NCBI GenBank assembly: GCA_048013815.1
Contig: CM106586.1
Span: forward strand, 24,180,001 to 24,244,000
From: Setoptus koraiensis
Taxonomy: Eukaryota; Animalia; Arthropoda
Direction of reading: 5' to 3'
DNA: 64,000 nucleotides
The notes under the pieces were generated by a model. The model searched no databases. It saw only the letters and a program-made list of their open reading frames with translations, and was not told the DNA's origin. Below are positions 15,634 to 63,545 of the stretch, one piece after another (positions within the stretch are counted from its first letter, which is position 1; the number at the start of each line of letters is the position of its first letter). Made by a program: the position numbers and the translations under genes.

Positions 15634-15973
15634 TTTAATCTAGTGATATTTTTTATATATTGTTGTTGCTGAATGTGTTATATATTTTATATTACTATAA
15701 TTAATCTTTGATTACAATGGGTCTCGTCACTAAGATTTTCTGGATACAATTATGTGTCTCTTGTACAATATTATACTGGTTGTGATCTGATTTCTTTTTC
15801 TTGTTCTTCTTGTTCTTGTATATAATAATTATCATTTATCTATTGGATAATTCTTTAGATCGCCAATCGTAGAATGCTTCAATATACTGCGGCGTTACAT
15901 TTATATTATGTGTGCATGTGTGCGATGCAGTTAGCGACTATGTTAAATATACACAAAAACACATACTTTTATA

Positions 15974-16114
15974 TAGGGTGATTAAATCAATCCACCCAAT
16001 TCTACAGCGACTATGCTAGCATGGCCTTTGTAGCGCATTTCTTGCACAGAAAAATGTATTGTTTGTTAGGCACAGCATGGCCGAAATCATGAACGTTTGC
16101 TTGGAAACACCCTA
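15974..16114. mobile_element. Possible degenerate Tc1/mariner-type MITE within the palindrome arm (mirror copy about 17312-17452)
   Basis: Termini TAGGGTG...CACCCTA with TA on the left flank; the mirror copy ends in CAGGGTG, a common mariner-like terminus. TIR identity beyond 7-10 nt is poor. Confidence 0.3.
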
Positions 16115-16331
16115 TGTTCAAAGAGAGCACACACTCTCTATATACGTCTGTCTCATTTCCTCTTTTATCTAAGCTTCAACAATGTTATATTTGCTCATTT
16201 CTAGTCTACAACTCGTAACAGCAGCCAAAAAGCAGCGATCAACAAAAATGCTTCAATTCTCAATACACACATATACTCGCGTACACACACACATTGCCTC
16301 GTATGCATGCGATGTTTGTCCGTACAAGCTA

Positions 16332-16729: not shown

Positions 16730-17653
16730 CCACACTTGCAAAGAATAGAAAGAGTAAAGAAAGTTTACACACACACACACAGACACGCTAACCAATGGAT
16801 GTGATCGAATTCGGGTGCAAACTGTATGGTGACCAAGTACTTTTGAGTTCTGCGCGGCAATAAGCATGCATTGAATTTATCAAAGTGCGCACTGAGCCTA
16901 AACTTGATTCTTTTTCGCCTTCAATGCGCTTACTAAATGAACTTTTTGTGCCGAAAAATTGTTATTGCCGCACAGAGCTCAAACGTATACCTGGTCACCC
17001 TTCATCATGTAGGCTGCATGGTGGTAAGCGACACTGTCGGACAGTGCACGAAAAGGTGCGCCCTCTAGTTTCGCACAATCAGAAAGGTTTTCGGACTGCC
17101 GCACTTTCACATATTGCGTGCATACGAGGCAAAGAGTCTGTGTACGCGAGTATATGTGTGTATTGAGAATTGAAGCATTTTTGTTGATCGCTGCTTTTTG
17201 GCTGCTGTTACGAGTTGTAGACTAGAAATGAGCAAATATAACATTGTTGAAGCTTAGATAAAAGAGGAAATGAGACAGACGTATATAGAGAGTGTGTGCT
17301 CTCTTTGAACATAGGGTGTTTCCAAGCAAACGTTCATGATTTCGGCCATGCTGTGCCTAACAAACAATACATTTTTCTGTGCAAGAAATGCGCTACAAAG
17401 GCCATGTTAGCATAGTCGCTGTAGAATTGGGTGGATTGATTTAATCACCCTGTTCATAAATATGTGTTCTTGTTCTTAAAGAAGCATTCTAGTTTGGTAA
17501 TCAAGAGGATTATCTAATAGTTCAAAGATAATTATTATAGGCAAACAACGTGAAAGAGGAATAAGGTCAGAATCAGCATAACACTGCGCAGGAGTCACGC
17601 AATCAGAGAACACGTGCATCAACAACAATATACAAAATTATTATAAGGTTGAA

Positions 17654-18175
17654 ATGGACGCGCAATTAAGATCACTAGTTAAATTGCATCTTATTATAAC
17701 ACGCTCTATATCCTCCACCAGCGTCTTGAATGGCACCCCTAAAAGAAGAGTCACAATTGAAAGAAGATTAAGGAGGAGATACGGTGACCAAAATATGCCT
17801 ACTGGCAGTCTCTTATTGCACTCCAAAAATAATATATTAGTATGCGGTAAATGCGGATCATATCACGAGGCCCATACCATTTGTAATAACTGTTACGATT
17901 TGATTAGAAAGGAGACACTGCCTATCATCGAGTCAATCAGAGAAGCACAAGGTTCCGATGCCATCACAAAAGAGGTCCTGTTGAGGTATAAAGGCGATCA
18001 AGTGGACCACTCACAGTATGCCAATCTGCAAATTGTTGAGACAGAAAGAACCAGACCATTGTGGTTCACAGATAATCTCTTAAAAAGGAAAGCTCTACCC
18101 GGCACCAATACCGAAACGGACCCGGCTGTTAGTGCAAATGACAACCTTATAAAAGTTATACCGGATAATAAATGA
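17654..18175 (+). CDS. MRPL32: Mitochondrial ribosomal protein bL32m, intronless
   Basis: R/S/L-rich presequence-like N-terminus, PKRRVTIERRLRRR, and the zinc site CGKCGSYHEAHTICNNC, followed by the typical EVLLRYKG and RPLWF segments. Confidence 0.88.
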   Translation: MDAQLRSLVKLHLIITRSISSTSVLNGTPKRRVTIERRLRRRYGDQNMPTGSLLLHSKNNILVCGKCGSYHEAHTICNNCYDLIRKETLPIIESIREAQGSDAITKEVLLRYKGDQVDHSQYANLQIVETERTRPLWFTDNLLKRKALPGTNTETDPAVSANDNLIKVIPDNK

Positions 18176-18259
18176 ATTGAGTTCATTGCAGTAGTCATAA
18201 TCATACAATTTGCTATTTTTTCCAGATGGTACTCTTCTGTTTTTTATATTTGCAGTTAG

Positions 18260-19093
18260 TTAGGTGGCTTTTGGAGTCTTGACTTCTTTTTTAGTAATAC
18301 TCTCCATGATCATGCAGATGGTCTTGTGCTTCGACACTAACTCATCCAGAGAAAAGAAGCCACTATCAGTCTTGATGGCTTTCACATGACCTGCTATCAG
18401 TGCGTCCGCGGCCGTCCAAGATTTTTCATCACTGGGATTGAAGTTTCTACGTTGCACAAGATCAGACTCTAGTTTGTTAAGAAATGACTCAAAATCGCTC
18501 AATATATTACTCTTTTCATCTGTGAATTTTTTCTGCATCTCTACTCTTTTAAACCAAAATAATATATGATTGAGCGGCCAGGCTAATTTGTAAGTATATC
18601 TGGGAAATGTGTACTCTTGAAGAGTCTGTTTCTGACACCAGCAACTGAACATTTCTACTTTTAAAAAGTTTGATTCTATCCAATCAATATAAGCTCGAGA
18701 TTCCGCATCCAAAATTCGAGGATTAAAATTCTCCAAAGAAACTTTTTGTTGCTTTGTAGCTGATTTCGTTTGAGAATGCAAATAAGTTGCAACCTCTTCA
18801 AAACCGCACAATATCCTGGTTCCTCGCCTAACCAGCGGCAATTTCCCATTAGTTGACATGTATTCTGCATTCTTCACCTTCATGAGAACACATTCGATGT
18901 CTGATATCTTGAATAAGGCATTAACACTCTCACTACTGGCTAGGTCATACAATAATATTTGAGATGGCAGTGGCTGATATAATTCGCATTTGTCCGTCCA
19001 TTGCTCGTGGTTGTCGGGTAAACACTGAAGAATATTTCTCACTTGTGTGTCAACTCGTTCCTGTTTACTGCTAGCAGAGTCATCATTTTCCAT
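18260..19093 (-). CDS. MTX2: Metaxin-2 (SAM complex, GST-like fold), intronless, with a chimeric N-terminus
   Basis: LYQPLPSQILL, NAEYMSTNGKLP and RYTYKLAWPLNHIL match metaxin-2 motifs (LYQQLKGEQILL, NAEYMSPSGKVP, YPWPLNHIL). Confidence 0.88.
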   Translation of the reverse strand: MENDDSASSKQERVDTQVRNILQCLPDNHEQWTDKCELYQPLPSQILLYDLASSESVNALFKISDIECVLMKVKNAEYMSTNGKLPLVRRGTRILCGFEEVATYLHSQTKSATKQQKVSLENFNPRILDAESRAYIDWIESNFLKVEMFSCWCQKQTLQEYTFPRYTYKLAWPLNHILFWFKRVEMQKKFTDEKSNILSDFESFLNKLESDLVQRRNFNPSDEKSWTAADALIAGHVKAIKTDSGFFSLDELVSKHKTICMIMESITKKEVKTPKAT

Positions 19094-19766
19094 AATTATC
19101 CAATAATGGTAATTCTAATAATTAATGAATACTTTGATCAATCGAAAGTCGAATTGCCTAAAGGACGAAATATAAATGGGTGGGAAATGGCTCCCTGAGC
19201 GCGGTGTGCATTCGCACAAAAATAATTTTAGTAGTATAGCATGCACAGAGAGCATGTGACACAGATTGTGATTGTATTTCAGAAACATAGGGAAAGCACC
19301 ACAGTCAAACATCTACATAAATCATTATTAGAATCAAAATGTTACCATTATTTTTTATTTTACTAGATATTCAATAAAACCGCTGGACGTGAGACCTTTC
19401 AAATGCTGATGTCTTTTTAATCAGATTGATATTAGGTTAAGTATTAGTAGTAGTAGTATTGGAATTGCGGATTCAGAATTATTTCGAATAATTATGGAAA
19501 ATGATGATTCTTCCGACGTTGTACAGGACCACATTACAATCAATGGAACCGTCAATAATATATCTGTTAGTCAGACTAATATGGATAGCTCATCTTCATC
19601 CTATGTGAGAGAATTCAATTCTTTGTTTAAGCCTCTGAATCCTGTCCAATTGCGGGATAGAGCATTGGCAGGAGGCTTGAGAAATTCCAAATTTAGAAGT
19701 TTATGTTGGAGATATTTTCTTCAATGTCTCCCGGACAACTATGAGCAATGGCTGGAAAAATGTGAA
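18983..19766. repeat. Diverged, internally deleted inverted duplication joining the MTX2 and TBC1D5 5' ends
   Basis: 19099-19076 (rc) vs 19488-19511 match at 23/24 nt across both ATGs. 19039-18983 (rc) vs 19710-19766 match at 45/57 nt. 19122-19100 (rc, tattagaattaccattatt) vs about 19326-19352 match apart from a short insertion. Confidence 0.9.
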
Positions 19767-21515
19767 ACTGATAGAAAAGAGTATCAGAGATTAAGAGACG
19801 AGCACGCCTTTGATCCAAGACAAGTGAATCACCCAATTGTAGAGAATAATCCTCTTTCTCAAGATGAGAATAGTCCATGGAATCAATATTTTGCTGATAC
19901 CAACCTGAGGAACGTTATAAAACAAGATGTCATACGCACATATCCAGATATGGAATTTTTTCGTAGCACTGAAATTCAATCTATTCTATCGAATGTATTG
20001 TTTCACTTCGCACGAGAGAACTCTAAATTATCATACAAGCAGGGAATGCACGAATTATTAGCCTCGTTACTATTTGTCCTGTACCAAGATGTGCAAACCT
20101 GTATCATTGCAAATGAAGGCGGTCTTGCCAATGATGATATAGCATCATTGCTCAACATAAATTACATAGAGCATGACGTATATATGGCATTCAGTCAATT
20201 GATGCAAACCATAGAAACCTGGTATCAAAATGATGAAATTCTACCTCCTCCGGCGGATGAAACCAATCCAACTGGCAAAGTCCAGAATAAATACCATGTC
20301 AGATCAGTGTTGGGCCTAAAGTTGAAAATGATCTCAGAGCAAATAGTTAAGAGGCATGATACAGAGCTTTTTAATCACTTGGAGGCGTTACAGATAGCAC
20401 CACAAATTTATGGTATTCGTTGGATGCGTTTACTGTTTGGTAGAGAGTTCCGTTTCACTGATTTGTTAGTTGTTTGGGACGCTATTATTGGTGATGGAAT
20501 ATCCCTTGGTTTGACCGATTATCTTTTTGCTAGTATGCTGTTGACAATTAGAGAACTATTAGTTCATAGTGACTATACTGATTGTTTGAACTTACTGATG
20601 AGGTATCCAGCAGTGAAGGATATTCAAAATGTGATAAAATTTGCTTTGCATCTTAGAGAACCAAACAGGTATCTTCGTCCAAACATAAATCTATCCCATC
20701 TTAGTCATAATCATAAACATCTACAATATTTAGAGTCAAGCAATAGAGGTTTTTCACTTAAAGGTGACTGTGATAAACAGCAGTCATCCTTACCGAATGT
20801 CGTCAACCAACGACAAAATAATACAACCAGTATCAAGTCAATGAAAACCACTGCAAAAAAGTTACAATCTAATGTTAAAAATTTGACAATAACAAGCACA
20901 ACTAACCAGGCCAAACAGAATGATAGCAAAAAGTTACATACAGCACAAGGAACAATCAGTAAACCCGCAATCCAGAGCAATAAGGCCAATCCTACATCAT
21001 CAGTATCAAGTAAAGATAGAGAGACCAACAAACAAAAGTCAGATAGTAGAATTCTCACAAAGGCGACTAATACTAAGGACTTAAGAGGAGTAATAGCCCC
21101 TGACTCAAGCAAGAACATTCATAAGAATATTATTCGAAATAATATAGTTCCTCCTTCGTCATCCCTCACAATCAATAGATCTCACATTAGAGAAATGTAC
21201 TCAATTTCTTCACACAGTTTAGATGACACTGCACCCAATAGCATTGTGACTAAAACAGTGGGGCGCAAATCGACAGCGTCCACAGATTCCTACGACCATG
21301 AGGATCTACATTCAAAAGTTGATTACTGTTGGCGATTGTTGAGTGATCAAATAGATTCTCTTCAGAAATGCTTGCCCAAAGAAAAGAATTTGAATTGTGA
21401 AGACGAGATTTATATAGCATTGGCGCAATTGAAAAAAGTGAGAGATGTTCTCAAAGGTTCCTTAAAATTGGAAGACGAGCTAGAGACACAACCCACAACT
21501 TATAAGAAGGATTAA
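19494..21515 (+). CDS. TBC1D5: TBC1 domain family member 5 (Rab7 GAP, retromer-associated), intronless
   Basis: NNPLSQDENSPWNQYFADTNLRNVIKQDVIRTYP (R-finger), YKQGMHELL (Q-finger), YGIRWMRLLFGREF, LMRYP, and a C-terminal coiled-coil. Confidence 0.93.
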   Translation: MENDDSSDVVQDHITINGTVNNISVSQTNMDSSSSSYVREFNSLFKPLNPVQLRDRALAGGLRNSKFRSLCWRYFLQCLPDNYEQWLEKCETDRKEYQRLRDEHAFDPRQVNHPIVENNPLSQDENSPWNQYFADTNLRNVIKQDVIRTYPDMEFFRSTEIQSILSNVLFHFARENSKLSYKQGMHELLASLLFVLYQDVQTCIIANEGGLANDDIASLLNINYIEHDVYMAFSQLMQTIETWYQNDEILPPPADETNPTGKVQNKYHVRSVLGLKLKMISEQIVKRHDTELFNHLEALQIAPQIYGIRWMRLLFGREFRFTDLLVVWDAIIGDGISLGLTDYLFASMLLTIRELLVHSDYTDCLNLLMRYPAVKDIQNVIKFALHLREPNRYLRPNINLSHLSHNHKHLQYLESSNRGFSLKGDCDKQQSSLPNVVNQRQNNTTSIKSMKTTAKKLQSNVKNLTITSTTNQAKQNDSKKLHTAQGTISKPAIQSNKANPTSSVSSKDRETNKQKSDSRILTKATNTKDLRGVIAPDSSKNIHKNIIRNNIVPPSSSLTINRSHIREMYSISSHSLDDTAPNSIVTKTVGRKSTASTDSYDHEDLHSKVDYCWRLLSDQIDSLQKCLPKEKNLNCEDEIYIALAQLKKVRDVLKGSLKLEDELETQPTTYKKD

Positions 21516-21919
21516 AAACACTATTTTGAACATAATGAATGAGTCAAGTTGTAATAACAAGTTGCAAGAACCTCATTGGAAATGCTGATACACACTGGAT
21601 AACAACAGTATGTTCATTTTATTTTCTTTGATAATAACAAGTGCTCTTTAAATATCGTATCTTCATTTTTGTGATACATGATGACTTAATGTAGGATTGC
21701 ACCAACAATCATTTGTTCTCATTCGAATGATCGAGAGATTTGTGTGACTCGTTCAATGCGCAAGTTTAATTGAATACATCGTAACAATCGCCTGTACACC
21801 GTAATTGATCAAACCAAATGCATCTTCGTTGTACTATGATGTATTCACTATCCTGTCATGTGTAAATTTGTTAACGTGTGTTTCTCGTTTGACTTATGAT
21901 TATTGATATTGTCATTATT

Positions 21920-34394: not shown

Positions 34395-37300
34395 TGTATA
34401 CCTATGTACCAATTGCATATTAAGCTGTACGTTGCATGTGTGAGTCGATTATGTCATTGTGCAAACGAGCGCTACATTAAGTGTGGTAACATCAATAGCA
34501 TGTAAACAGAAAGGAGAGAAAGTAATTCGAAAAGGGGGAGCCCCAAAAATTTACTGTTACTGCTGGCCTGACGACGCGCAACCAAATGCAAAATATTGGA
34601 GCGATGCGATCAATTACTAATTTTAGTAATTCTACTATTGACATAATTAGATTATGTAATGTGCTAATCAGTGGAATTTGGCCGGCATAAGATGGAGATT
34701 GGCTGTTGGACTTGCGATCGATTGGACTTGTGATGGAACTGGCGCCAGTTCCATCACAGCAGCAAGAGCTAAGGCAACAGTTACAGCAATACTTACAGCA
34801 ATAGTTGCAGCAATAGTTTCAGCAAAAGATATGGCACCACATGCAGTTACTACCTGTAATAGGTACATCTGATAAAGGCATTGTGTGATGAGCCAACAGG
34901 TAAGCAAGTGAGCGACGATTGACGGCGATGACACGGAAAGTGAAAAGTAGAAATGAAGAAACGAAGCACAAACCAAGTGAAGAAACGAAGAAATGGAAAA
35001 ATGAAGAAACGAAAAAATGGAGAAAAGAAGAAAAGAAACGAGTGTGTGCTCTATGAGACCTGTGAATCTTACACCTGTTAGTAGCTTGTTGTATCATGTG
35101 TTGTGTTGCTGCGGTTCATGTTGCTCTATGAAGATATCCGTTATAAGCAGCAGTTGTTGTTGTTGTCGTTGCTGTTGTTGTTGTTTGCCCCGAGAACGAA
35201 CGCAACTCACCGAACAGTCAGGCAAGTCTGGTCATATGATCTGGTCACAAATTTACTGTGATGACATGAAAAATGAAAAATAAAAAATAAAATAAAATAT
35301 AAAAATTATTGTGTGTGACAAATCATTTGTCGTACACTTATGGCCAATACTGGTTATGTAATAAATATCGCCGTTTATAAGTGAATGTGCCTTTGATCGT
35401 TGAGACACTGACGACCACCAAATTTTTTCTATTTTATAACGTTCAACTTGTTGTTGTTGCTGCCGTAACTTACAAGTTGTAACTCAAGTGAGTTGGCTCC
35501 CACTGGCTCGCTAATTGAGTCACAATTTGTGAGTCACAAAGCGACTCACAGACTGGCCAGCAGTGACAGCAGCAACAGGTTGATCATGGGCACACACTAA
35601 GCCAACCAATACTATAAATGGAATGGCAAGTTGACTCAATTAGAATCAAATTGAATTCAATCAAATAAAGATAGTCGCATTGCAAGTGATAACAACAGCA
35701 ACAACAGCAACAACAGCAACAGCAAAAATGAATCAAGTCTGTTGAGACTTTTTGTTATGGTCAAGCTCCGCCTGTTTGACAGAGTTCAAACAACTGTCCA
35801 GATAAGCAGCACTCAAGACACATCCTTGAATCTGTGACAGGCCAACAGATGAACTCTCATCATCTTACATCTTCTTCATTGTATTTCTTACGTAACTCTC
35901 TCTCTCTCCCTCTGACCACCAATAGACACACATACACACGATGACCAGTGCAGTGAGCTATACTCGTTGACATGACTCGTTTTCCAGTTGTTCATCATCT
36001 CACACACACACAGTCTCTCACTGCTCACTAGTTACATCTCAATTTACAGTTATTTTGTCTCTTTGTATGTACGAGTCATGTCCATGTATCTATGAGCTGT
36101 GTCATCATATCGATCGCTGTGTGTTTAGATGCTGACAAGTTTCAACACTGACACAGAGTTATATCAGATCGGCAACAATAGCCATCGTGCGGCCGTTTAT
36201 ATCGACCGTATAAACGTCAATAAGTCAACATAAGATGAGGCTAAGTCAGCCAACATCGATCAGTAGTGTCAGCAGTGACATACCGGCGTTGCGTAATAAT
36301 CAACAACAACAAAATTGTATTGTATTCACAAGTGTCTGTCCAAGAGCGACAACTTAAACTCACTGCACACTGTGCAATTGCAATTGCAATGACAAGTGAC
36401 CAACAACAACACCGACCACAACATAATTGTGAAAGTAACTGCCAAAAGTAATCAAATTGAACTAAAATATCAACCAAATAATTCAAAAGCAATCTCGTCT
36501 CGTCCGTATGGTAATTTATTTCATAGTCACAATTGTCAGTTGAGTTTAGTTGATGAGTTGATACTAACAGTGTGATAAGCGCACCAACTTCCTAGTGGCT
36601 GCTCTTCAAATGTCACCTGTGTCTCGCTTGTCACATAACGTTGCGTAACGTACTTGGCAATAGCAGTGACATAAACAAGAATTCAATAGGTGGTCAACTG
36701 ACTGATAACGACGACAGCATTATCAAAAAATCACATCATACCACAGAGTGCGTTTACTTGGCGAAAGTGTGCTGTTTGTTAGTGGTCAATTGCGAATTGG
36801 TTGCCCAAAGTATCAATAAAAAATGATCCAATTATTCAATAAATAATCTACAAGTAAAATATTGCTCACCCGACATTCAACAGTCGCAATCATTGTATCA
36901 ATTTGAAGTCACACTCAACTCCAGTGTCCAGTGTCTAACATAGACAATTCAAATGACAAGTATCAATGCAGTAGAACATGGATTGACGTGATAATTTAGC
37001 ATCTTTAGAAAATCAACAGTTATTATTTTGCAAGGGGCCCGTCGTAATAAAACAAAGCACATAAATAATATATTATGCAATCAGAGGCGAGCTGTCGGTG
37101 CGATATTGAGTTTATTGTCGCATGATACCAATAACTGTCATCATTGATAGGTCAACTGTGTCATGGTTAGTTGGCATTAGATGCATTAAGGAAGCAAGAA
37201 AGTTAATTCTGGGCACACTTATTGAGTTTTCATCTACAACAATTTGAAAAATATTAAGTTTTTAAATATGCACAGCGCCAACTTTAACGGCTTTATGACA

Positions 37301-37689: not shown

Positions 37690-37748
37690 GTAGCAACAAC
37701 AACAGCGACAACAACAACAACAGCGACAACAACAACAACAGCGACAAT

Positions 37749-37792
<44 letters not shown>

Positions 37793-37811
37793 CGGCAACA
37801 ACAGCGACACC

Positions 37812-44087: not shown

Positions 44088-44445
44088 AAGATTACTAATT
44101 AAATCGCATCTTATCATAACACGCTCTATATCCTCCACTTGCGTTTCGAAAGACACCTCAAAAAGAAGAGTCACAGATGAAAGAAAAATTAGGAGGAGAT
44201 ACGGTGACCAAAACGTGCCTACTGGCAGCCTCTTATTGCACTCCAAAGATAATATATTAGTATGCGGATCATATCACGAGGCCCATACCATTTGTAATAA
44301 CTGTTACGATTTGATTAGAAAGGAGACACTGCCTATCATCGAGTCAATCAGAGAAGCAAAAGAGATACTGTTACAAAAGAGGTCCTGTTGAGGTATAAAG
44401 GTAAACAAGTGGACCACTCACGGACTCTAGTCATAATCATACAAT
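44088..44445 (+). pseudogene. Degraded copy of MRPL32 (and its 3' flank)
   Basis: Aligns to 17668-about 18210. It lacks the ATG, has a 9-nt deletion removing KCG from the CGKC zinc motif, carries frameshifts, and has a deletion of about 170 bp at the 3' end. Confidence 0.92.
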
Positions 44446-44489
44446 TTGCTATTATGCCAGATGATGCTTTTCGTTTTTTCATATTTTCA

Positions 44490-44960
44490 GTTAGTTAGTT
44501 TAGAGTCTAGTTTCTGACACCAACAACTAAACATTTCCCCTTTAAAAATATTTGATTCTATCCAATAAGCTCGAGATTCCGCATCCAAAATGCGAGGATT
44601 AAAATTCCCCGAAGAAACTTTTTGTTGCTTCGTAGCTGATTTCGTTTGAGAAAGTAAAAAAGTTGCAACCTCTTCAAAACCGCACAATGTCGTGGTTCCT
44701 TATCTAACCAGCGGCAATTTCCCATTAGTTGACATGTATTCTGCATTCTTCACCTTCATGAGAACACATTCGATGTCTGATATCTTGAATGAGGCATTAC
44801 TACTCTCACTACTGGCCGGGTCACACAATAATATTTGAGATGGCAGTGGCTGATATAATTCGCATTGCTCGTGGTTGTCGAATAAACCGAATCGAAGAAT
44901 ATTTCTCACTTGTATGTCAACTGGTTCCTGTATACTGCTAGCAGAGTCATCATTTTCCAT
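44490..44960 (-). pseudogene. Degraded copy of metaxin-2
   Basis: Aligns to 18260-19093 (MENDDSASS...NAEYMSTNGKLPLVR*), with a premature stop, frameshifts, and a deletion of about 350 bp of the 3' half. Confidence 0.92.
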
Positions 44961-45000
44961 AATTATCTAATGATGGTACTGTCGATAATTAATTAATAAT

Positions 45001-45535
45001 TAACTTGGACCCATCATCAGCTTCATGCTGATATTCGGACACGTTTAGTGATTTATTAATCACTCTTGGTATATCCTTAATCCGTTGCCAGCTCTTTTTG
45101 GAATAATTTCGGATAACTCTTTTTGGGACATGTTTGGAAAGTCAAAGTTCATGACAATATTGACTGCTCGAATGTCTATAGCATTATGGCTGAGTGAGAA
45201 GGTCTGTTAGTGATATACAAAATGTAAAATGTAAAATATAAATTTGTAAGTTAGTGGTGATGACAAGTGTGACATCTAGGGACGGCTCCCGTTTGCTCGT
45301 GACACTCGATTATCATACCTGAACAGACGAGATTTGTGCATGGGCCTTTGCGGAAATGAAGCAAGACACAGTCACAATGAGCTTGTGACATGTTTGCGTG
45401 GATATATTAATTATATATCCACGCGTGATAGGTAGTAGCAGGAGTAACATATGTCCGCTTGTTGTGGTGATGCAATCGAGAAGGAGTGATGTAAAGTGGA
45501 AAAGGTGAATAGAGACAACGGATAAATTGAATCAT
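45001..45535 (-). pseudogene. Degraded copy of the DDX6 3' portion (last two exons, intron 4 and part of intron 3)
   Basis: Aligns to 13784-about 14572, with many indels. Retained intron sequence shows a DNA-level duplication rather than retroposition. Confidence 0.88.
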
Positions 45536-45781: not shown

Positions 45782-47437
45782 TCATTCCGACGATGAACTG
45801 CCAGGAGAATAGGCCAATTGATAAGGAATTTGATGATGATGATGATGGTGGTGATTATGATGAACAGTTGATGGTTGATTAAGATGATTTAAGTGATGAT
45901 TATGATGATGATTGTGATGATGTTTTGATTTGGCCTCGGCAGCTCTGTCTCGTTGTCTTCGATTCTTAAACCAATTGCCCACTTGTGTTGGCGTCAATCC
46001 GGTTGCTTGCGCTAATTCACGTTTTTTACTAGGATTTGGATATTGATCTTGTAAATACCATTCTCGCAATAATGATCTCGTTCTTTCTTTAAAACAATGA
46101 GTCTTTTGTTCGCCGTCCCAAATAGTTCTGGGCAACGGATATTTCTTTCTAACTCTATATTTGTCTACTGGACCTAAAGCACGACCGCGCAATTTCTCTG
46201 CCTCTAAATAATGTGCCTCTAACCACATTGATTGTAGTTTTTGATGTGATTCCTTTGAGAAACGATGCGATTCTAATATCTGATACAATTCATTGTAATT
46301 GCCCAAATGATAGGCCACCAATGCCTTGGCTCTCAGCACAGGCTCCAATTCGCTCAATTCATGTGACACGGGCAACGACCATAGGAACCGGCCCAATCGT
46401 TCAATGTCACCCGATTCCTCTAATGTCTCTAAAACGGCGGCCACTTGCGATGACGTAAACGGCATCGAGGCGGCCGCGCTGGCGCCGCCAAAACAATCAC
46501 CGGATTGGTTTGAATTGGCGGCCGCTGCTGCGGCTGCCGCCATCAACGCCGACTGAGCCTGACTCGAAATGGGCGCAATTGCGGCCGGTAACGGTGGTTG
46601 CTGTTGTGCTGATTGTGGTGGTGTTGTTGATGGTGGTTGTGGTTGTTGTTGTCTCTGGTGTTGTTGTTGTTGCTGTTGTCTCTGTTGTTGTTGTTGCTGT
46701 TGTTGTTGTTGCTGCTGCTGTTGTTGCTGTTGTTGTTGCTGTTGTTGCAACATAAATTGCATTGCCTGTGCCAGTGCTTGTGCGTGTGCCGCAGCAAACG
46801 CCTCGAGAGCCCCATGAATTGAGGCCGCCGCTGCCGCGCTCATTTGAGGTGATTGTTGTTGATGATTGTTGTTGTTGTTGTTGTTGTTGCTGTTGTTAGT
46901 GGTGCTGCTGCTACTATTGGTGGATGTGCTGGTGGTTGTGGTAGGGGGCGCTAAAATACTAGGAAGTGCTGATAATAGCTGCTGGTGATTTGTTGTCAAT
47001 TGTTGCAATTGTTGCTGCTGTTGGTGCTGCTGCTGGTGCTGCTGTAGTTGGTGGTGGTTGAGGTGGTTGTGGTGTTGTTGTTGTTGTTGTTGCTGTTGTT
47101 GCAAGAGACTATGATGAAATTGGTTCAAATTTATGCTGCCATTATTGTGTAATGAGTGATGCTGATTGCGATGATTCATGAAACCATTGCTACCATTGTT
47201 TTGTTGCTGGTGCAAGTGTGAGGCTGGCACAGGAGACTCTCGCGACGACACAGCTGCGCTGCTGCTTCTGCTGCTACTTCCGCTGTGATTGTTGTTGTTG
47301 CTGTTGTTGTTGCTGTTGTTTATGTTGTTGTTGTTGTTACTATTGATGCCTATATTGATTAGGCTATCATCGTCGTCTATAATACTAATTGGTGATATGG
47401 AACGCGAGCTCGCGCTTGAATTAGTGGACGACTTCAT
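45782..47437 (-). CDS. Optix: SIX3/6-class homeobox protein (Optix), single ORF with a long poly-Q/N/H/A N-terminus
   Basis: Six domain ([20 protein letters not shown]...[22 protein letters not shown]) and a homeodomain beginning with the Six3/6-diagnostic QKTH tetrapeptide ([18 protein letters not shown]...[12 protein letters not shown]). Confidence 0.94.
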
Positions 47438-47729: not shown

Positions 47730-50700
47730 GCTCTACCTTCACCAACTGCCCTCACCTGTGCTGTTGCCCCCCACTAACATGAAGGTATAAAAACATGAGG
47801 GTATAACAATAACAATATCGGGGTATTTTGTTGTCGGTGCCCTGGTGAGTGTAGTTGGTACCTGTTTGTTTATTAGCTGTTTCTATTGTTTATTGTGTGC
47901 AGTGGGTTGCTTTTTGTTGCTTCTTTGGCTTTTTGCAAAACGGATAATTGTTAGTGTTGCTAGGCAACAGCAAAAGTTAAGTGATACTGAGGCAACTTGA
48001 AACAGCCGCCGGTTGTTGTTGCTGTTTGACAGTTGTGAGCCAATCAAATAAATCACAATTACAATACTAGTCACAATTATAATTGCGTAATTATAATAAA
48101 AATAAAGGATAGCGAGTTGTGTGGTGTTACAAGTGGCGCTTGTGATCATGTAACTAATACTGATATATAATGCGAAGTAGTGCTGTCGGCTCAATTGCTC
48201 TGACCAGTGGTCATTTGTGACTCTCACAAGTTGCGCCGAACAGCCACGGGCACACATTACCTGTGTCTGCATTAGCTGCCACGATGTGTATTACCTGTGC
48301 TCCATGTATTACCTGTGCCAACCATGCACTAACTGTACCAGCTGTATGTGTAATAGGTGTATGTGTTAGGTTATTAGGAGTGATGAGGCTAGCACAAGTG
48401 AACGATTACCAAATTAAATTACCTGAGCGCCTCTTCTTACTATGAGATAATCAATTTTTGGAGCTTACTTGCTAAGCCATGGAGCCTGCTTACTAACCTG
48501 GCTCTACGTGCATTTGCCATTTGCACAGTGCACATTATAACTTACATTATATAACTTGTATTATATAACTTGTATTGGCCGCTGACCATCGCTACTATCA
48601 CTGTGCGATTGTTGATGATTACGCAACAAGCCTATATTGCTACAGTTAGTGGTCGCTTTTTTATTCACTGCCCATGATAGCGAGCAAACTGCACACAGCA
48701 TGCAGTGATACATGTTGCGTAATAATCATATGTAAATATATAATAACTCGTTTGCTTTTCTCTCGCCGGCACAATTTGCCACTCACGCACACAATTTACG
48801 CCGCCAAACCAGCTCGTGGTAAAATCACCTAAATCATCGCTGCAGTTGTTGCAGTTGTTGCTGTTGTTGGTGTTGTTGTTGGTGTTGTCGGCGGCGCTGG
48901 TGATGATGGACACACACATCGAAGGCACTCTGTCCGCGTGCAACTAATGGTTAGGTGCATAAATTTAATTTTTACTTTTGCGCGCCATCTCTCACACCGT
49001 GAGAGGTGCTACCGCCGCTAACAAGGTAAGCAGACGACCACCACTTACAATTGTTAAATATATTGTAAAATATTGCATGTCACACACAATATGAATATGC
49101 AAGTGAACACCTAAGGCGACAGTAACACAGCAAATAATAACAATTGGCACCCACAATATCTGCACACTTGATATGATGGTCAGCGTGTATTACGTAACAT
49201 CAGATTGATGGGTGCTAGCTGCGTACGTTCGGCCTGATATACGTATGGTTTGGTTAATATGTCATAATGACACGTTGCTACACCAATGTATGCGATTGAG
49301 CGACCACCAAGTGAGCACTCAGCCAATCACAATTACCATTTACAATTTACAATTTGCTCTACTTAACAACAAACTTTGCACTTTACAAGGTGCAAATACA
49401 AGCCGAGGTGATCATTGCGCATTGATCGCGTTACTCGTCATAGAGGCACAGGGATTATATTATAGAGAGCGATGAGTAAAACGATGCTGGAATCACGTGA
49501 TATATGGTCAGTTAGTTGGTTCAGTCGTGCAGGTTATCGTGCAGTTTAGTCAGTTAGTGTGAGTGTGTGTGCCAGTGTGAGTGCAGTGATTTGCCATGCT
49601 GCGATTAGGCTCACCAGTGCGATTAGAGGTGTTGTTGTTACGTAAACGTGTGATATAACACACGTGTAATATAACGTGAAATTAAGTATAGCGGCAGTAG
49701 TAGTAGTAGTAGGTTAGTTTATAAATAATAATAATACTGACAAGTGAGTGCAGCGAGTTGCACGTGCAAAATGAATGAGTGCAATTATTGCTTACTCAAC
49801 TACTTAGAGGGATCGAAATAGCAAGAAATCTTGTTAATGAGCTGATCATTAGAGAGCATTAGTTGGTGTTGGTGTTGGTGTGTTGATCAATCACATCACC
49901 TCTACACTAACAGACTGTGAGTCTGGATTGAGGCTTTACAATTCTCGGCAACAACATCATCAAAAACAGCAACATTGCCGACAACAACAACACCGTCAAC
50001 AACAACAACAACATCAATGGCAACGACAACCTATCAGCTACATGCGCTCGATAGAGATGTTACTATCATGATCGCTGAACCCGACAATACACACGACAAA
50101 GGAAGAGAGATGATTAATCATCGCCAATTCATCCATTTGTCGATAAACGAATCAATCCGATTTGCAATTGGAATGGTTGTTGTTGTTGTTGTTGCTGTTG
50201 TTGTTGGACGCAAACAAACAATCACAACAAACAGCTGATTTGGAGCTCGACTGATAGATTTGATGATTCAATCGCCGATTCATATGCCAGTATTATCTAT
50301 CGACAGGTGTCTACATGTGAGGCTAGCTATTGTTATGGTATTGTTATGCTTGACACAGCCAACTGGACAGACATTGGCCGCTGCTGTTGACTAATAACAG
50401 TTATCACAGTTACACTAACAGCAGTTACTGTGTCTTGTTTGTAAACAATCAACACAAATATACAAATACTACTACACTTATTGTAGACGCACAAATAAGC
50501 GGCTGGGACAAATATTAAATGAGCTTCTTTTATGCAACTGTCATGCAACTGTTACGCAACTATTATGTCGACTAGCCCCAATTGGAGGCGAGCAACTTTT
50601 TTGTTGTTATCGTTTGTTGTTGTCGTTTGTTGCTGTCGTTTGTTGTTGTGTCAACGTACGAACCAATATCAATGTGAGCACCACCGACAACAGCAGCAAC

Positions 50701-52694: not shown

Positions 52695-55600
52695 TATCTA
52701 TTATGCAACGCACACACACACACACATGTAATAAATTCACTATTTAGCACGGATTCACACGCACACCGTACGTTGCGTAAGATGAACAGGGAACACGCGC
52801 AAACAGGCGTGGCCTGCACGTAGCCCGTGGCATATTGTTACATTATATTGGGCGCATGGTTTGCATGAGGTTTGGTGCTCGCAACTGTTGGTACACAGTG
52901 CGATGTAATACAGTGTGATGTAATACAATGTGATGTAATACGGACAGTTTACAGCAGAGTGAGAGTGAGAGTTGCACAATCACAGTGTTGCAAACAGTGT
53001 GCATACACACTCCATATAAACACGTGCTCGCCATTGAGCATATTGCACGAAATGGCACAACGTGTGCATCGATATGCCATTTCATCGTCATCGTGCTCAT
53101 TGTTGTTGGGTCAGTCTGAGATTGTTATTGCCATTATTGGCCGATGTTGGCGCTCTCAATCTTTGCAAAACTTGTATTCAGGTGAGTGCAACATAATATA
53201 CAACATAATACATATAAAAGTGTGTATATGTGTGTTTATAAGTATAAGTGGACGAGAGATAATCGACAGTTATCGCCTTGTTGTTGTTGCGTTGTGCAGC
53301 TCGCTCTATCTGTTGCAAGCACCAATAAAACACCACTCAATCGCGTATATCGCGTCTATCACGTAATAGCAATAGTTATAGCTATAGCGAGATAATGATT
53401 ATGATTGATGAGTGGCTTAAAAGTAAAAGTTGTGCCAGCCACTGCCCAACAAGGTGTGCAAATGGTGCACACTGGTGCAGACTGGTGCGAGTGGCGCAAA
53501 CTGGTGCAAATGCTAAACCAGATAAGCAATCTTGCAAGGTGTCCAATTTAATTGTTGCAACTTGCAAGTTGCTTCCAATTGATTCCAATTGGAGCGGCCG
53601 CATCAATTTAGATGTCTCGCACACAATTGCAAAATGCCCTGCTCGCATACTTAAAACTGACCACAATAATACTCATAAATGCGTCAGTGGTCACTATTTC
53701 TGTTGTGTATTATTGTGTATTATCGTGCATTATGTGTGTGCTGCAATAGCGAGTGGACCAACATTGATATTGATTATTATTACGAGTGTATAGATATTTC
53801 GCCTGCCACAGACAACATAATCTCAACACACACACACACACAAGGTGAATATTCACAATTTGAACACAACAACAATTACAATTGCTATTGTTGTGATTGT
53901 TTATTATTATGTTAGCCAGCAACAGTGACAGATGAGCAATAATAGACAGATAAAAAGATGATGTGGCGCTCCCAATCACTGACCAGTGGTCAGTGTATTC
54001 AATTGTGAGCCTGTTTTATGTAATATTATATAATGCGCGCATGTGTTGCCAATGTGGGCATGATATTGGCCAAACAAGCTGGCACAGTTGTGTAAAGTGG
54101 CACAGTCACATGCAATTGGCACATACATTTACAGTGGCTAGGTGGGCAACACGATTAGCTGCTGACTTTCAACTTTTAATCACAACAACAGACAGGTAGA
54201 CAGTTTAATTGGCCATGGTCAATTGTACAAGTGTTACCAGAGTATTACATAATCTTTGTTTTTAATCATCATCATCACGTATGTATGCATGCATGTAGAC
54301 AACAACGACTAGCTTTACAGCACAACCTGTCGACTTAACTGATGATAGTCAGATCTGCTCAGGTCTGCTCAGGGATAATATTGGTGTGTTATGCAACCGT
54401 TGGTTGCTATTGCTTGAGAGCACAATGTAATGTAAATAACAATTGCTATACATTTGTGTATAAGCTAACAAGTGGTCACTAGTGCATGGTCTAGATAACA
54501 TTAGATATAAAGCCCATGGCAATTACATAACATTGCACAACATGATAAAATAACAATTTGCCCATGATTAAACACTTTTTACATGCGATTGTCATCGGTG
54601 CTATATAGATATAAATATTTATATCGCCGCTCTGATGGTAACTGACTGACTGGGCAACAAGACGACAATTTAATGGCGATGATGACCATGTAACAATCAA
54701 CATTACAATCAACAGAGTGCCACTATACCTACTTATACCAACCATGGGAACGATAAAAACAACCGACAGCCACAACTGTTTAAAACAATAATCCATGCAT
54801 ATATAGAGCGATTTGTTTGTGTGTCCATACTGGCACAACAATTGATATTTATAGGAGCGCGGCACACATTGTAACTATCTGGCCAGACAACGACAGCAAC
54901 AACAACAGCAACAACAACAGCGACAACAACAGCAACAACAACAGCGACAACAACAGCAGCAACAACAGCGACAACAACAAGTTAATCAAAATCAATGGAT
55001 AATACTAAAACAATGACACGGCAAGGATAATTGGCACACAAGCACAAACAATCCGGTTGTCGCTTTGTTTGTTTTGGTCGCTCTCATTATTGTTGCAGCG
55101 CGTCAACAACAACAGCAACAGCAACAACAACAACCACAGTTTGACTATCGAGCCACCCCGGCCAAGCGAATAATTGTGAGAATGGGCTGCATAAAATGTT
55201 GTCTTGGTGCTAATTTTGCCATCGCCATGCAATTGAGTGCTTTCAATAAAATAAGTTGTCGGCTGGAAGCAATCGCTAGATCGATGCTTGCCGATTGTTG
55301 CTTGTTGCCGAGATTGATCTAGTTATGTCTAGATGTGGTTGTATTATGTGTTGTTGTTTGGTTGTTGTTTGGCTGTTGCTCAGCTGACTCAACTTACCTG
55401 AAGCTGCTGCTGCTGCTGTAAACATTGTGTGTGTGGCAGTTGTTTAAATCGACTCTATAACTGCAAATGGTGGCGTAATCTTGTTGTACTTGTTGGCCAG
55501 GTGAGTGAGTCACATTACAGTGTCCCGTACAGTTGGCTAAGTTTTAAGCTAAGAGTTTGTTCTCGAAAAGTTATTTTTTCTTGTTTGGTGGGGGCGAGCA

Positions 55601-57514
55601 GTTAGTGAGAAGTAAGTCAGAGTCAGAGTGAGTCAAAGTCACACTCATCACAGTGTGTAAAGTAAGGCGAGTGAGAAAAGTTGGATCAATGGGCCAACAA
55701 TCGCCGATCGATCGATCAAAATGGATAAGTAACGAGAGCGAATAATAATCAGCTTGCTGTCATGCTCATCGTCTCACGCTGGATCAGCCAGCGCTTGTTG
55801 TTGTTGTTGTTGTTGTTGGACAGTTGTTGTTGTTGTTGTTGGACAGTTGTTGTGGTTGGTGTGGTTGTTGCTACTAACACAAGTTGCTGCAAGCACAAAC
55901 TGTGCTTGTTGTTGCAGCAACACACAAGCGGTGGTTGGTGTGGTTGTTGCAAACACAGGTGATAGAAAAAGTGATAACTATTCAATTCAAATATTCAGAC
56001 GAAATGTTGCAACACACCAGTTTCCAGCACTAACAACTACAGGCCAACAACAGTGATAACTAGACACACAACAATCTATCAAAATGTGCCATTGTGTGAA
56101 GACGTAATTAGAATTGTTAACCGCAATTCGCCAGCCGCTATTTGAATGTTGATTGGACGGGATGAGATGAGATGCGAGCGCAACAACAACCACACCAACA
56201 GCAACACTAACAGTGACAGCGACAACAACAACGACAACAACAACAACGACAACAAGACAGAGAATGAGGGCCAAATGAAAAGAATTGTAGCACGGTACTG
56301 TTATTATCGGCGTTGTTGTTACGAGTCGATCGCTAGCAAATTGTAAAATTTTGCTTTGGTCAGTTGGTGTGAGTCGTATCGTTGCAGGGGACACACACAC
56401 AAAACACTTGTCGTCTTGTTAGCGTCGTTGCTGGTTTATCCGCCAGATATCAATGCGCGTGCTTGCAATGCCATCAATCACTTCACTTGACACACATTAT
56501 TAACTCATCAAGCGAATAATATTCTCATATCTCATTCTCTCATGCGATATGAGAATATTATTTCCACTGCGATATTTCCACTGCAATATTTTCACTGCGA
56601 CCGTCGATGAGATGTTTTGCGAGTCGTTTCGCGAGCTGTTTTGTGGCGCGCCAGAAATAACTCAATTACGGTTGCGATAACATGAGCTGGCAAACGAAAA
56701 CAGCAAACGGATAAATGCGTGCAGCTCCAGTAATTAACACGTTGTCTAAGCTGGCTCGCGAACTCTATTGGTGGCATCCCAATTGCGAGCCGATATCTCA
56801 ATTCACAAAAGACTCTCTTTGCACTGCAGGCCAGCATACCAACGATAATGCAAAAGAAACACAAAGCGCACGAGCAGCAAAAGTGCTCAATTGTACCACT
56901 GGTCAGCAATGATCCACTGTGGTCAGTTTGAGTGTGCCCGTTTGACGGTGCACCGGTGCATCGCACGACAATTGACTGCAAACAAGTTGTTTCTATCACC
57001 AACAACAATGCACCTTTTGATGCACCATTTGTACCATTTGCACCATTCGAACCATTTGATTTGAGTTGCAGCAAACTCAGGTGCTGATAACAGCAACAGC
57101 AACAGTAACACCAGCGCTATGAAGAGAGTGTATCATTGTGATCAACTAGATGATCGCGCCAACAACAACCACAACAACAACAACATCAAATGATGATCGA
57201 TAACGATGAGCAATTCAACAATGACACTCCGTGCGCGCATAATAAATACGCGCCACAAATAATAATCTAAATCACGATGACCAATGGTCAGTGTTGTTGT
57301 ATCCATGGCAGCGCATGTGTGTTGCTGTTGCCAGAAAGAAAGTGCCACTCATTGTTATCAATTGGCAATGTGTTGTCAAGCGCTCAAATTGAGACCAATA
57401 TCAAATGAGATTATCACTCTATTATCATTACTATTATTGTTCGTTGCTCGATCATGTTTTTTGCCTTTGCGCCTATCGTTGCCGTTGCGCTCATCCTTGG
57501 CTCGCTTGTTCGTT

Positions 57515-61000: not shown

Positions 61001-63444
61001 TAGCACGTAGACACAAGCGAGCGACAATTTCACTGATTACTCACACATGACATTGTGTGTTCGCCATCACTGCTGATAATGAATTTATGAGCAGCAACAA
61101 TTCAAGATAAAACGCAACTGCGTCACAGTAAAAACGCAGATAATTAGTATTCATCAGATGAAAGTTGCGAACAATATGAGCATCATGCGACTGTCACATC
61201 TGTCTAATGATCGCATTCGGATCTGCGGTATTTGCGCATTCATATAGCTGCACATATGACTCGTATGATTATAGTTAGACGTTCGTTTATTTAGTTTCAC
61301 GACATTCATTTACAGCGAACAGCGGCGGTGTTGCTGGCGATTGGCTTACTCGATCGTTGACTGGAATAATGATCGGCGCCAAAAGGAAAAAAATGAACGA
61401 ATGCTGCCGGTGACACCTATGCTCACACAGTATCGTCTAATCACATTATATTTATACGGCGATGCCGCAAAAAATCATGCGCGATGCCACAGCGCGTTTT
61501 ACATTAATTAACGGCGGCTACATGCGCCGACTGACAATTGACAGTTGACAATTGTCAATTGTCAATTGTCAAATGGACATGAGCACGCAATCAATTCTCG
61601 TCACCTGCTGCGCGTCACATGCTCGTTGTGGCAACACAACACAAACAAACAAACGCAACTTGAGGTGACATCAGCTGGCAGCTTTTGGCAGCGGCTTTTG
61701 CCAGGTTGGCAGCCAATGTGACAAGCTGACTTCATTGCTGCCAATGAATGCCAACAATGAATGAACGAGGCATTGTGATGGAGCGTTGAGGCGAGACCAG
61801 AAAGAGCGCACAAAATAGCCAGTTCTCATATGAGTTTGTGCAGTGTGTTGTATCGATAGGCCCTATAATGATGATAATTAACAGTAGACAGAGAGACACA
61901 AAAATGAAGGTCATTCCTATAATATTATATATATAATATATATACATGGTACTGTTGTATATTATAGCGAACGGCAGTGGTGCATCACCATCACATCATA
62001 TATTGTGCTACACTCTAGTGCGTCTTACCTGTGCTGGCTTGTTGTCACGTCACTACATGTAGCCGGTATATCCATGCATGAATATTGTTCAGCTACACGG
62101 ATATGTCACCAGCACATGTCACCATTGGCAGCTGATCGGCGGTCATGGGCGCCAATGAGCATGACATTTGTAGTTGCTGCTAATGGTTTTTGTGTGACGA
62201 GCGGCCGGATAATATTCAATAGCAATACAACTTATATAACAAGAGTACAACAATAGTATAACAATGCCATACACACAGCATAACTATACTATAGGTAGTG
62301 ACTGGATAAATAGATGGATAGTCAGTTGTTTCAGTTGAGCGAACTCGTCGTCGGAATGCGCACCCAAAATAGACAACACACACACACACATCAGAGCGTA
62401 TAAGTTGCCATTTTTGTTGTTGTGCTTGTTGGCGCTGCTGTTGTGGTTGTCGGTGTTGTGGTTGTCGGTGTTGTTGTTGCTGTTGTTGTTGCTGCTGTTG
62501 TTGTTGGGATCCGTCATTATTTATGGTATGATATTATTTTTATTTTTGCCCAATGTGAACACACAAGAGTGTCTATACAACAGCAAGCCAACAGCACACA
62601 ACATGCGACCAGAAAAGTTTTCTTGTCTTTGTGTTATCGCTGCAACGACTTGCCTTATTGTAAATTGTTCATTTTGATGAGATAATTATTCTTCTCAGTC
62701 ACACATCTCACTCGAATCGAATCGACTCAACTCAAGTGTTCGCTGTCTCTTGATCTATCTCATGTATACATATTGCATGTATATGCAGCGTCGGCATATC
62801 CAGAGTCACTCATTCAAAGCGAATAATGGATTCTTTCTCTCTCTCTCTCTCTCGCCAGCCATGCAACTATCTGGCGAATCATCACGGTGTTCATTTGACT
62901 TTGAGTAGACACTGTCGACTAACTCAATACGCTATATATTATATGATTATGATGACTGCGACGATGACTGCCGCGATGACTGCCATGATGATTGCTATGA
63001 TGATTGCGATTGCGATGACGATGATGTACAGCGCGCCAATATGATGATGCGGCCCGCCGCATCATCCCGAGCCGCATGTATTATTTGAAGATGGCGCGAT
63101 GAGCACAACAGATTACAGACACACATCAATTAGTGGGATAATTTCTCAATATTTCTCGATATTTTCCAATATTTTCCAATATTTTTATATTGTCTAGCCG
63201 GTTGTTGGTAGTGGCTGTTCATGGCATCATAGGCAGCATCATGGCCGTCATCATAGCTACACCTGAGCTACACCCGAGCTACACCTGAGAGCCGTAGAGG
63301 TTAAAGATAAAAGACCTGGCGAGAGACTGCAGGCAACAGCCAGATATTGCTAGCTGTCTCACTGTTGATCGGGCATATCTAGCCGGCGCGATGCCATGAG
63401 ACAAGAGAGCATCGACCGATCGTTGCCATCGGGACACATACACT

Positions 63445-63463
63445 ACGACAACAACAACAACAA

Positions 63464-63516
<53 letters not shown>

Positions 63517-63545
63517 ACAACAACAACTACTACGACAACAACAAC
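63445..63545. repeat. Compound (AAC)n/(AACAGC)n microsatellite
   Basis: Direct inspection; it explains the poly-V, poly-C and poly-NS ORFs. Confidence 0.9.

Follow-up and report, generated by a model that had tools for sequence, protein, structure and literature searches.

A mite metaxin-2 gene that probably took its start codon and N-terminus from an inverted copy of its neighbour TBC1D5

The stretch of DNA analysed here, called the window throughout, comprises 64,000 nucleotides (nt) of Setoptus koraiensis (GenBank assembly GCA_048013815.1, contig CM106586.1, positions 24,180,001 to 24,244,000). It contains the genes for metaxin-2 (MTX2) and TBC1D5, which are arranged head to head on opposite strands and share at their facing ends two inverted repeats with a spacer of 388 nt between the arms. 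An earlier note, made from the letters of this DNA, had proposed that the N-terminus of MTX2 is a mosaic of TBC1D5 sequence. Here we characterize the locus, the donor and the age of the shared segments, and we weigh the routes by which they may have arisen. The chimeric origin of MTX2 and the direction of transfer from TBC1D5 to MTX2 are both very likely, while the molecular route can be proposed only tentatively.

The head-to-head locus and the anatomy of the graft

MTX2 matches the Pfam families Tom37 (65.6 bits with a cut-off of 25.1, 7e-18) and GST_N_4 (32.7 bits with a cut-off of 30), and about 120 relatives are recovered by a full HMMER search. Its named relatives are metaxin-2 or metaxin-2-like proteins (Panonychus citri, Brevipalpus obovatus, Pavo cristatus), hence the assignment to metaxin-2 and not to metaxin-1 or metaxin-3. 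The motifs NAEYMS..G..P and WPLN align between MTX2 and the metaxin-2 homologues. A PDB sequence search with MTX2 as query gave no match. TBC1D5 matches Pfam RabGAP-TBC (77.8 bits, 1e-21), and its translation harbours both the arginine finger IKQDVIRT (IxxDxxR) and the glutamine finger SYKQG (YxQ). Its best named matches are the TBC1D5 proteins of Aceria tosichella, Sarcoptes scabiei, Dinothrombium and vertebrates, with E values of ~1e-111 to 1e-95. By the named relatives of MTX2 and TBC1D5, the source organism is placed among the acariform mites.

Both sides of the locus are covered by contigs from four public runs, which break at a repeat common to an MTX2 pseudogene located elsewhere in the window; the loose contig ends at 19111 match the upstream flank of this pseudogene. 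The whole locus is spanned by a 2.8-kb contig (L001) from a second species. Since the public-run contigs and L001 reproduce the arrangement, the locus is not an artefact of assembly. In the low-depth public run X7, contigs lie over the coding parts of MTX2 and TBC1D5 only and none over 19112-19339, a pattern that could come from an unlabelled RNA library or from sparse DNA coverage.

The two longest inverted pairs within 18200-21600 are the arms of two graft segments, A and B (Table 1). Pair A extends over 41 nt with 78% identity and contains a core of 20/20 identical positions, while pair B extends over 58 nt with 79% identity. The two segments are colinear in both genes, with a gap of 18 nt in MTX2 and 180 nt in TBC1D5, and the MTX2 copy shows a net loss of 54 donor codons that preserves the frame. 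The missing TBC1D5 codons ~12-72 were either deleted afterwards or skipped during copying. Codons 1-37 of MTX2 are grafted, and native metaxin sequence begins with codon 38, the L of LYQ, a conserved triplet at the opening of the GST-like domain. By its letters the graft spans the first 37 codons with their ATG and no less than 6 nt of leader; upstream of -6 the similarity between the arms is ambiguous.

Table 1. Coordinates of the locus and its parts in the window, with gene orders on outgroup contigs
Feature	Position	Strand	Description
MTX2 coding sequence	18260..19093	minus	277 codons plus stop, intronless; from the list of open reading frames
TBC1D5 coding sequence	19494..21515	plus	673 codons plus stop, intact, intronless; from the list of open reading frames
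Graft segment A	19059..19099	minus	6 nt of leader, ATG and codons 1-12 (MENDDSASSKQE); inverted copy of the TBC1D5 start
Donor arm A	19488..19528	plus	TBC1D5 leader, ATG and codons 1-12
Linker	19041..19058	minus	18 nt, most of codons 12-18
Skipped donor stretch	19529..19708	plus	TBC1D5 codons ~12-72, missing from the MTX2 copy
Graft segment B	18983..19040	minus	MTX2 codons 19-37 (RNILQCLPDNHEQWTDKCE); inverted copy of TBC1D5 codons 73-91
Donor arm B	19709..19766	plus	TBC1D5 codons 73-91 (RYFLQCLPDNYEQWLEKCE), directly past the TBC motif A Trp
First native metaxin codons, LYQ	18974..18982	minus	from the alignment to metaxin-2 homologues; junction 18982/18983
Spacer	19100..19487	none	388 nt; almost the entire divergent intergenic (promoter) region
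Truncated MTX2 pseudogene	44502..45001	minus	copy of 18621-19134, 87.8% nt identity; the part at 44960-44511 begins with the chimeric sequence
Outgroup layout L004			BRR2+ ADK- TBC1D5+ MTX2-
Outgroup layout L007			MTX2- MADF- ADK+ TBC1D5+
Outgroup layout L003			ADK- MTX2+
Outgroup layout L005			ADK- TBC1D5+ Sec5-
Outgroup layout L006/L008			MTX2 and TBC1D5 on separate contigs of one sample

The similarity is specific at the levels of both protein and DNA. BLASTP of MTX2 against TBC1D5 returns segment B with 14/19 identical residues and E = 3e-7, and a tblastn search of the entire window with MTX2 as query recovers nothing but MTX2 itself, the pseudogene and the TBC1D5 segment (E = 1.4e-5). The 20-mer ATAATTATGGAAAATGATGA occurs at exactly three sites in the 64 kb, in MTX2, in TBC1D5 and in the pseudogene, with an expectation of 0.03, while a degenerate pattern for segment B hits only the MTX2 and TBC1D5 sites in the window (expected 0). 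Most of the identical residues in the segments are encoded by the same codons in the two genes. Recomputation reproduced the figures given in the earlier note, namely 23/24 identical nt across the ATG, and 14/19 residues and 45/57 nt between MTX2 19-37 and TBC1D5 73-91. Its description of about half of the changes in segment B as silent also agrees with our count, where the 12 differences divide into ~5 synonymous and 7 non-synonymous ones.

Donor, distribution and age of the graft

To identify the donor we relied on an alignment of 16 TBC1D5 orthologues from other sources, ranging from mites to fish and including Sarcoptes, two spiders and a fish. The pattern FRSxxW..FL.CLP…W is present in all 16, as is the motif WRYFLxCLPxxxxxW, with L79, P80 and W86 invariant or nearly so. 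The 13 mite-type sequences, one of them named Aceria tosichella, read FRSLCWRYFLxCLPExxDQWLESC, and those of Sarcoptes, the two spiders and the fish diverge outside the CLP/W core. The donor segment is located inside the Pfam RabGAP-TBC match and aligns with the motif A region of Gyp1. No LQCLPDN-like segment is found in ~70 metaxin-2 homologues, the nearest outgroups included; the consensus of the homologues ahead of the domain is E-P-W-P-[DE]-D-[AV]-x-L-Y-Q-P. Because the segment is conserved in TBC1D5 and lacking in metaxin-2, TBC1D5 is the donor of codons 19-37, up to the GAA before LYQ, in line with the original proposal that the segment is native to TBC1D5. The MTX2 gene of the second species and the TBC1D5 gene of the window have the same nucleotide at 17/18 positions across W..KCE. 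The same direction is favoured for the first 12-14 codons by colinearity and by the ME found regularly at the start of TBC1D5 orthologues; in the outgroups, MTX2 begins with MA, ML or MS. Codons 1-37 trace to TBC1D5 and codons 38-277 to metaxin-2, while the donor TBC1D5 has remained full length, and we consider a chimeric MTX2 with TBC1D5 as its donor very probable.

Among 5.8 billion proteins, a word-based search found only one close relative of MTX2 (P0001, 93% identical); the outgroup MTX2 proteins were reached by the full HMMER search. Contig L001, from the species of P0001, carries TBC1D5, the spacer, MTX2 and MRPL32 in the same head-to-head layout, and its MTX2 carries the same graft, MENDDSTSSMQERVDTQVRYILQCLPDNHEQWPEKCELYQ. 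The synonymous divergence (dS) between the two species is ~0.75. As the reading frame is intact in the window and conserved in the second species, the description of MTX2 as an in-frame chimera holds.

Over the shared segments, a count on the four sequences gives six parsimony-informative sites that pair MTX2 with MTX2 and TBC1D5 with TBC1D5, and none that group by species. We take this to mean that a single event preceded the divergence of the two species and that no conversion followed, and continuing gene conversion between the arms was rejected on the same count. Graft and donor differ by a dS of 0.65-0.97, similar to that between orthologues, so that the event may be little older than the split, as far as these small numbers indicate.

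The next relatives of MTX2 are 34-44% identical and start with ..DEDFVLYQ, ..DYILYLP, MLPNAFILYQ, ..MSTLYLYQ or ..GEDFVLYQ. These nearest outgroup proteins lack both the graft and the Trp, also on contigs where TBC1D5 lies nearby in a different arrangement. An alignment of MTX2 across other mites, which the earlier note had suggested as a check, accordingly places the graft only in the window species and in that of P0001. The contigs of the higher-scoring TBC1D5 matches (P0130, P0136) hold no adjoining grafted MTX2, and metagenome contigs gave no match to either of two degenerate patterns, which described the graft/native junction and a His-containing graft. Since outgroup layouts such as L004 and L007 hold both genes nearby (Table 1), MTX2 and TBC1D5 are old neighbours, with direct head-to-head contact and the graft confined to a small clade. 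SRP72, BRR2, ADK, TBC1D5 and MTX2 form a microsynteny cluster in several outgroup mites (L003, L004, L005, L007), and their order and orientation differ each time; on these contigs the neighbourhood is seen to have been repeatedly rearranged.

The pseudogene carries a premature TAA, as well as a 12-nt deletion and a 3-nt insertion in the graft, and ends near codon 155. It has the same chimeric start as MTX2, so the graft is older than this copy, as had been concluded before, and it also predates the species split. By a rough clock the pseudogene would be younger than that split. Both indels in its graft region are multiples of three. The surrounding stretch, 44088-45001, is a decayed partial copy of an MRPL32-MTX2 block (17668-18014, 18192-18263 and 18621-19134) at ~87% identity; the copied block lacks the 3' part of MTX2, and MRPL32 fragments adjoin the MTX2 pseudogene.

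Constraint on the graft, the spacer and the protein model

Between the two species, codons 1-37 of MTX2 differ by 8.5 synonymous and 7.5 non-synonymous changes, corresponding to a dS of 0.68, a non-synonymous divergence (dN) of 0.086 and a dN/dS ratio (omega) of 0.13 (binomial P against neutrality = 0.003). Codons 19-37 alone give an omega of 0.15 (P = 0.05), and the remainder of MTX2 gives 0.035. The 37 grafted codons are free of gaps between the species, and the neighbouring spacer has many indels. The grafted ATG is the sole ATG before codon 71, which lies within the Tom37 domain, and an in-frame TAG is located 24 nt upstream of it. Because the graft is without indels and its dN/dS is ~0.13, the estimate that had been recommended for the grafted codons indicates that they are translated and under constraint. 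Expression of MTX2 is likewise presumed from the conserved reading frame.

Comparison of the spacer with L001 283-658 shows conserved blocks together with many indels. Several blocks are far better conserved than a dS of 0.75 predicts: ATGGGTGG; GTGTGCAyTyGCACAA followed by AAATAATTTTAGT; GAGCATGTGA; and CAATAAAACCGCTGGA. We read them as probable shared promoter elements, one of which is nearly palindromic. In a mirror-alignment test the spacer scored 14 against 11.4 +/- 1.9, a value reached in 52/500 shuffles, so that its symmetry is not significant. A reading of the whole spacer as a decayed palindrome thus does not hold for MTX2/TBC1D5.

We then examined the protein in an AlphaFold2 (AF2) model, the confidence of which is read at the level of blocks. 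With a mean predicted local distance difference test (pLDDT) value of 87.4, the model shows a GST-like two-domain fold and is matched by Foldseek to GDAP1, GSTs and chain C of yeast SAM complexes (7vku, 7btw, 7e4h) with E ~1e-5. Residues 8-23 are modelled as a low-confidence helix and residues 24-35 as coil with a pLDDT of ~59. Strand 1 of the thioredoxin-like half is predicted to comprise residues 36-41 (CELYQP), suggesting that the last two graft residues, 36 and 37, are part of the fold. The modelling proposed for the N-terminal GST-like domain therefore returns the fold, with the end of the graft in its first strand.

The graft Trp is Trp32, and the graft of the second species reads W-P-E like the metaxin consensus. 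Alignment to metaxin-2 homologues places the native start at LYQ and the graft Trp at the position of the metaxin Trp, both as had been noticed before; a W occupies this column in 41/70 homologues, and in these the L of LYQ follows at the same W+6 distance. The native motif E-P-W-P-[DE] six residues before LYQ is not present in MTX2, and the in-register Trp is encoded by TBC1D5-derived DNA. From the outgroup starts, the ancestral metaxin-2 Trp has been lost in the nearest outgroups. As these have no Trp there, homology at the junction was perhaps also lacking. The register of the Trp may be a coincidence or may reflect selection among possible junctions, and it is best regarded as a curiosity.

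Origin of the graft, known parallels and meaning

Taken as a whole, our preferred reading is that the original N-terminus of metaxin-2 gave way to a copy of the TBC1D5 5' end that is inverted and internally shortened, with fold-back synthesis as the likeliest origin; we hold this with good, though not complete, confidence. The fold-back route as such is a tentative proposal, somewhat less than an even bet. In yeast, fold-back templated repair proceeds from a resected end that folds at an inverted microhomology, is extended along its own strand and is joined to another end (PMC11724301), and human fold-back inverted duplications with spacers have been described (PMC3907307). At MTX2, a DNA break would have removed the 5' end of the gene. 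Resection of the TBC1D5-side end would then have let it fold back, the 388 nt of today's spacer forming the loop, and the folded end would have primed synthesis along its own strand from ~-6 through the TBC1D5 start to codon 91. A template jump during this synthesis or a later 162-nt in-frame deletion would account for the shortening, and the new end would have been joined to the body of MTX2. The precursor may plausibly have resembled the L007 layout, with the intervening DNA lost. We propose that this product was fixed because only an in-frame join with an ATG beside an active divergent promoter could rescue the conserved gene. The anatomy is consistent with such a route: the arms are inverted, the spacer is single copy and the distal arm is joined to unrelated metaxin sequence at 18982/18983. 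The data fit 'duplication plus deletion', as first suggested, and a polymerase template jump alike.

Several points weigh against this reading. The pLDDT over most of the graft is low (~59-73), where the matching E-P-W region in the canonical metaxin-2 of Brevipalpus is modelled at 94. The selection test for codons 19-37 by themselves is marginal (P = 0.05), and the transcription start, the translation start and the absence of splicing in MTX2 are deduced from open reading frame logic and dN/dS. The direction of transfer of the first 12-14 codons alone is not established independently, the ME start being the sole hint. Concerning the route, yeast fold-back copies, mostly 5-34 bp with a loop of 41 nt (PMC11724301), are much shorter than the MTX2 graft and its spacer; the spacer is without residual mirror symmetry, and the fold-back point reveals no clear microhomology.

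Among the rival explanations, an inversion with staggered breaks comes closest, although we regard it as unlikely. In the model of Ranz et al., one break would have been staggered over the TBC1D5 5' end and another would have fallen in the 5' end of MTX2. The inverted piece would thereby have been bounded on either side by copies of the TBC1D5 5' end in opposite orientations, and subsequent deletions would have shortened the spacer and removed the 54 codons. At 17/29 Drosophila inversion breakpoints, flanking genes are present as inverted duplications (PMC1885836), and the reshuffled SRP72-BRR2-ADK-TBC1D5-MTX2 neighbourhood, with its four outgroup layouts, would suit such a history. However, this route requires more steps, the spacer holds no trace of an inverted MTX2 5' end, of ADK or of MADF, and, as a promoter, it has remained well conserved in the two species.

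Slightly less probable still are two separate TBC1D5 patches, one at the start and one over codons 19-37, placed by ectopic gene conversion or by template switching (microhomology-mediated break-induced replication or fork stalling and template switching, MMBIR/FoSTeS). The two blocks are indeed 18 nt apart in MTX2, where the intervening stretch has no clear origin, and their spacing differs between the genes, a patchwork typical of template switching. Yet conversion requires prior homology, which the unrelated genes do not have; the blocks are colinear, share one orientation and have diverged equally, with the paralogue dS resembling that of orthologues; and the site count shows no later exchange.

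A reversed or mixed direction, for instance with the first 12-14 codons passing from MTX2 to TBC1D5, is improbable. It draws on the variability of the extreme TBC1D5 N-terminus among species and on the start of TBC1D5 in the second species, MDNYDS, where the two MTX2 copies and the TBC1D5 of the window start with MENDDS. Segment B is nevertheless certainly native to TBC1D5, colinearity argues for one event in one direction, and neither the ME starts of TBC1D5 orthologues, set against MA, ML or MS in outgroup MTX2, nor the absence of sites grouping by species fits a reversal. Hardly more credible, and if anything less so, is the idea that the graft is leader or promoter DNA kept for regulation, outside the mature protein, with translation starting elsewhere. 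The low model confidence for residues 1-35, the adjoining conserved bidirectional promoter and a coding status derived from sequence would allow it, but no further ATG occurs until codon 71, within the Tom37 domain, substitutions are biased to synonymous sites with no indels over a dS of 0.68, and residues 36-37 are predicted to lie in beta-strand 1. Similarity by chance or convergence, for which one might cite the shortness of the segments and a native Trp near the position in both proteins, is refuted by the E value of 3e-7, the 20/20-nt match with 0.03 expected, the colinear adjacent matches, the shared codons and the recurrence in a second species.

Chimeric genes of related kinds are familiar. 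Drosophila jingwei and Sdic reportedly arose as chimeras via partial gene duplication, chimeric genes are said to have been surveyed by Rogers and Hartl, and young C. elegans duplicates, according to what Katju and Lynch are said to have found, are in many cases inverted, adjacent and partial. Like such partial-duplication chimeras, MTX2 would consist of a duplicated 5' piece fused in frame, with an intact donor and a product kept by selection. Unlike them, MTX2 is the working housekeeping copy with its own start replaced in place, not a spare duplicate; its donor is the divergently transcribed neighbour, and a piece of the TBC motif A region now serves to extend the N-terminus. As a chimera built by partial inverted duplication, MTX2 is of a known kind; what is unusual is that a conserved housekeeping gene had its start replaced in place by the 5' end of its divergent neighbour.

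The preferred fold-back reading shares with described fold-back duplications (PMC3907307; PMC11724301) the inverted arms, the unique spacer, the self-templated extension and the join to unrelated sequence. In contrast to the yeast insertions of 5-34 bp with a 41-nt loop, ~120-280 nt would have been copied at MTX2 across a spacer of 388 nt, and in contrast to the human cases, which extend over kilobases to megabases and are pathogenic, the MTX2 product was fixed as a functional coding change. Those systems are defined by microhomology, and at MTX2 none is visible after such divergence. The locus also resembles the cases of Ranz et al. 2007 (PMC1885836), where inverted partial gene copies lie beside rearrangement breakpoints, in that its neighbourhood was repeatedly rearranged; here, however, no inversion is demonstrable between the arms and the copies are only ~400 nt apart.

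A second pair of genes in the same window, DDX6 (start 15633, minus strand) and MRPL32 (start 17654, plus strand), is also arranged head to head. Their first 10-11 codons are nearly the same (MDAQLRSLVKL in MRPL32), with 25/30 nt identical, and the starts flank a 366-nt inverted repeat of 96% identity (arms 15953-16318 and 17108-17473) with an outer 51-nt pair at 78%. As in MTX2/TBC1D5, unrelated divergent neighbours share their first codons on opposite strands. DDX6/MRPL32 share the first codons only and have a decayed palindrome as spacer, whereas the spacer of MTX2/TBC1D5 is not palindromic and the copy reaches donor codon 91, including part of a domain. The window also contains CAA/CAG-type trinucleotide runs on both strands (35150-35185, 37708-37805, 47284-47359, 49947-50213, 55110-55153, 55778-55818, 62403-62506, 63445-63573), which probably encode poly-Gln/Asn and cause many spurious inverted-repeat calls.

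It is conceivable, though doubtful, that the MTX2 locus exemplifies a process that recurs in streamlined gall-mite genomes and is specific to their lineage. If so, intergenic deletions would often destroy the promoter-proximal end of a gene, which would survive only through a fold-back copy of its neighbour's promoter edge, start and first codons. Many head-to-head pairs with mirrored starts would then be expected, and essential proteins would repeatedly gain foreign N-termini, including a Trp re-supplied at the ancestral metaxin position as in MTX2.

For MTX2 itself, the finding would mean that a conserved component of mitochondrial import had its start codon and N-terminus swapped in place for a flipped piece of an unrelated neighbour; two species and several outgroups document which gene was the donor, when the transfer took place and that the graft has been under purifying selection. 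The finding suggests that a protein can tolerate, as an extension of its N-terminus, a fragment of a catalytic-domain fold and that small rearrangements of the fold-back style can end constructively. Together with DDX6/MRPL32, it offers a testable link between genome compaction and the capture of neighbouring starts.

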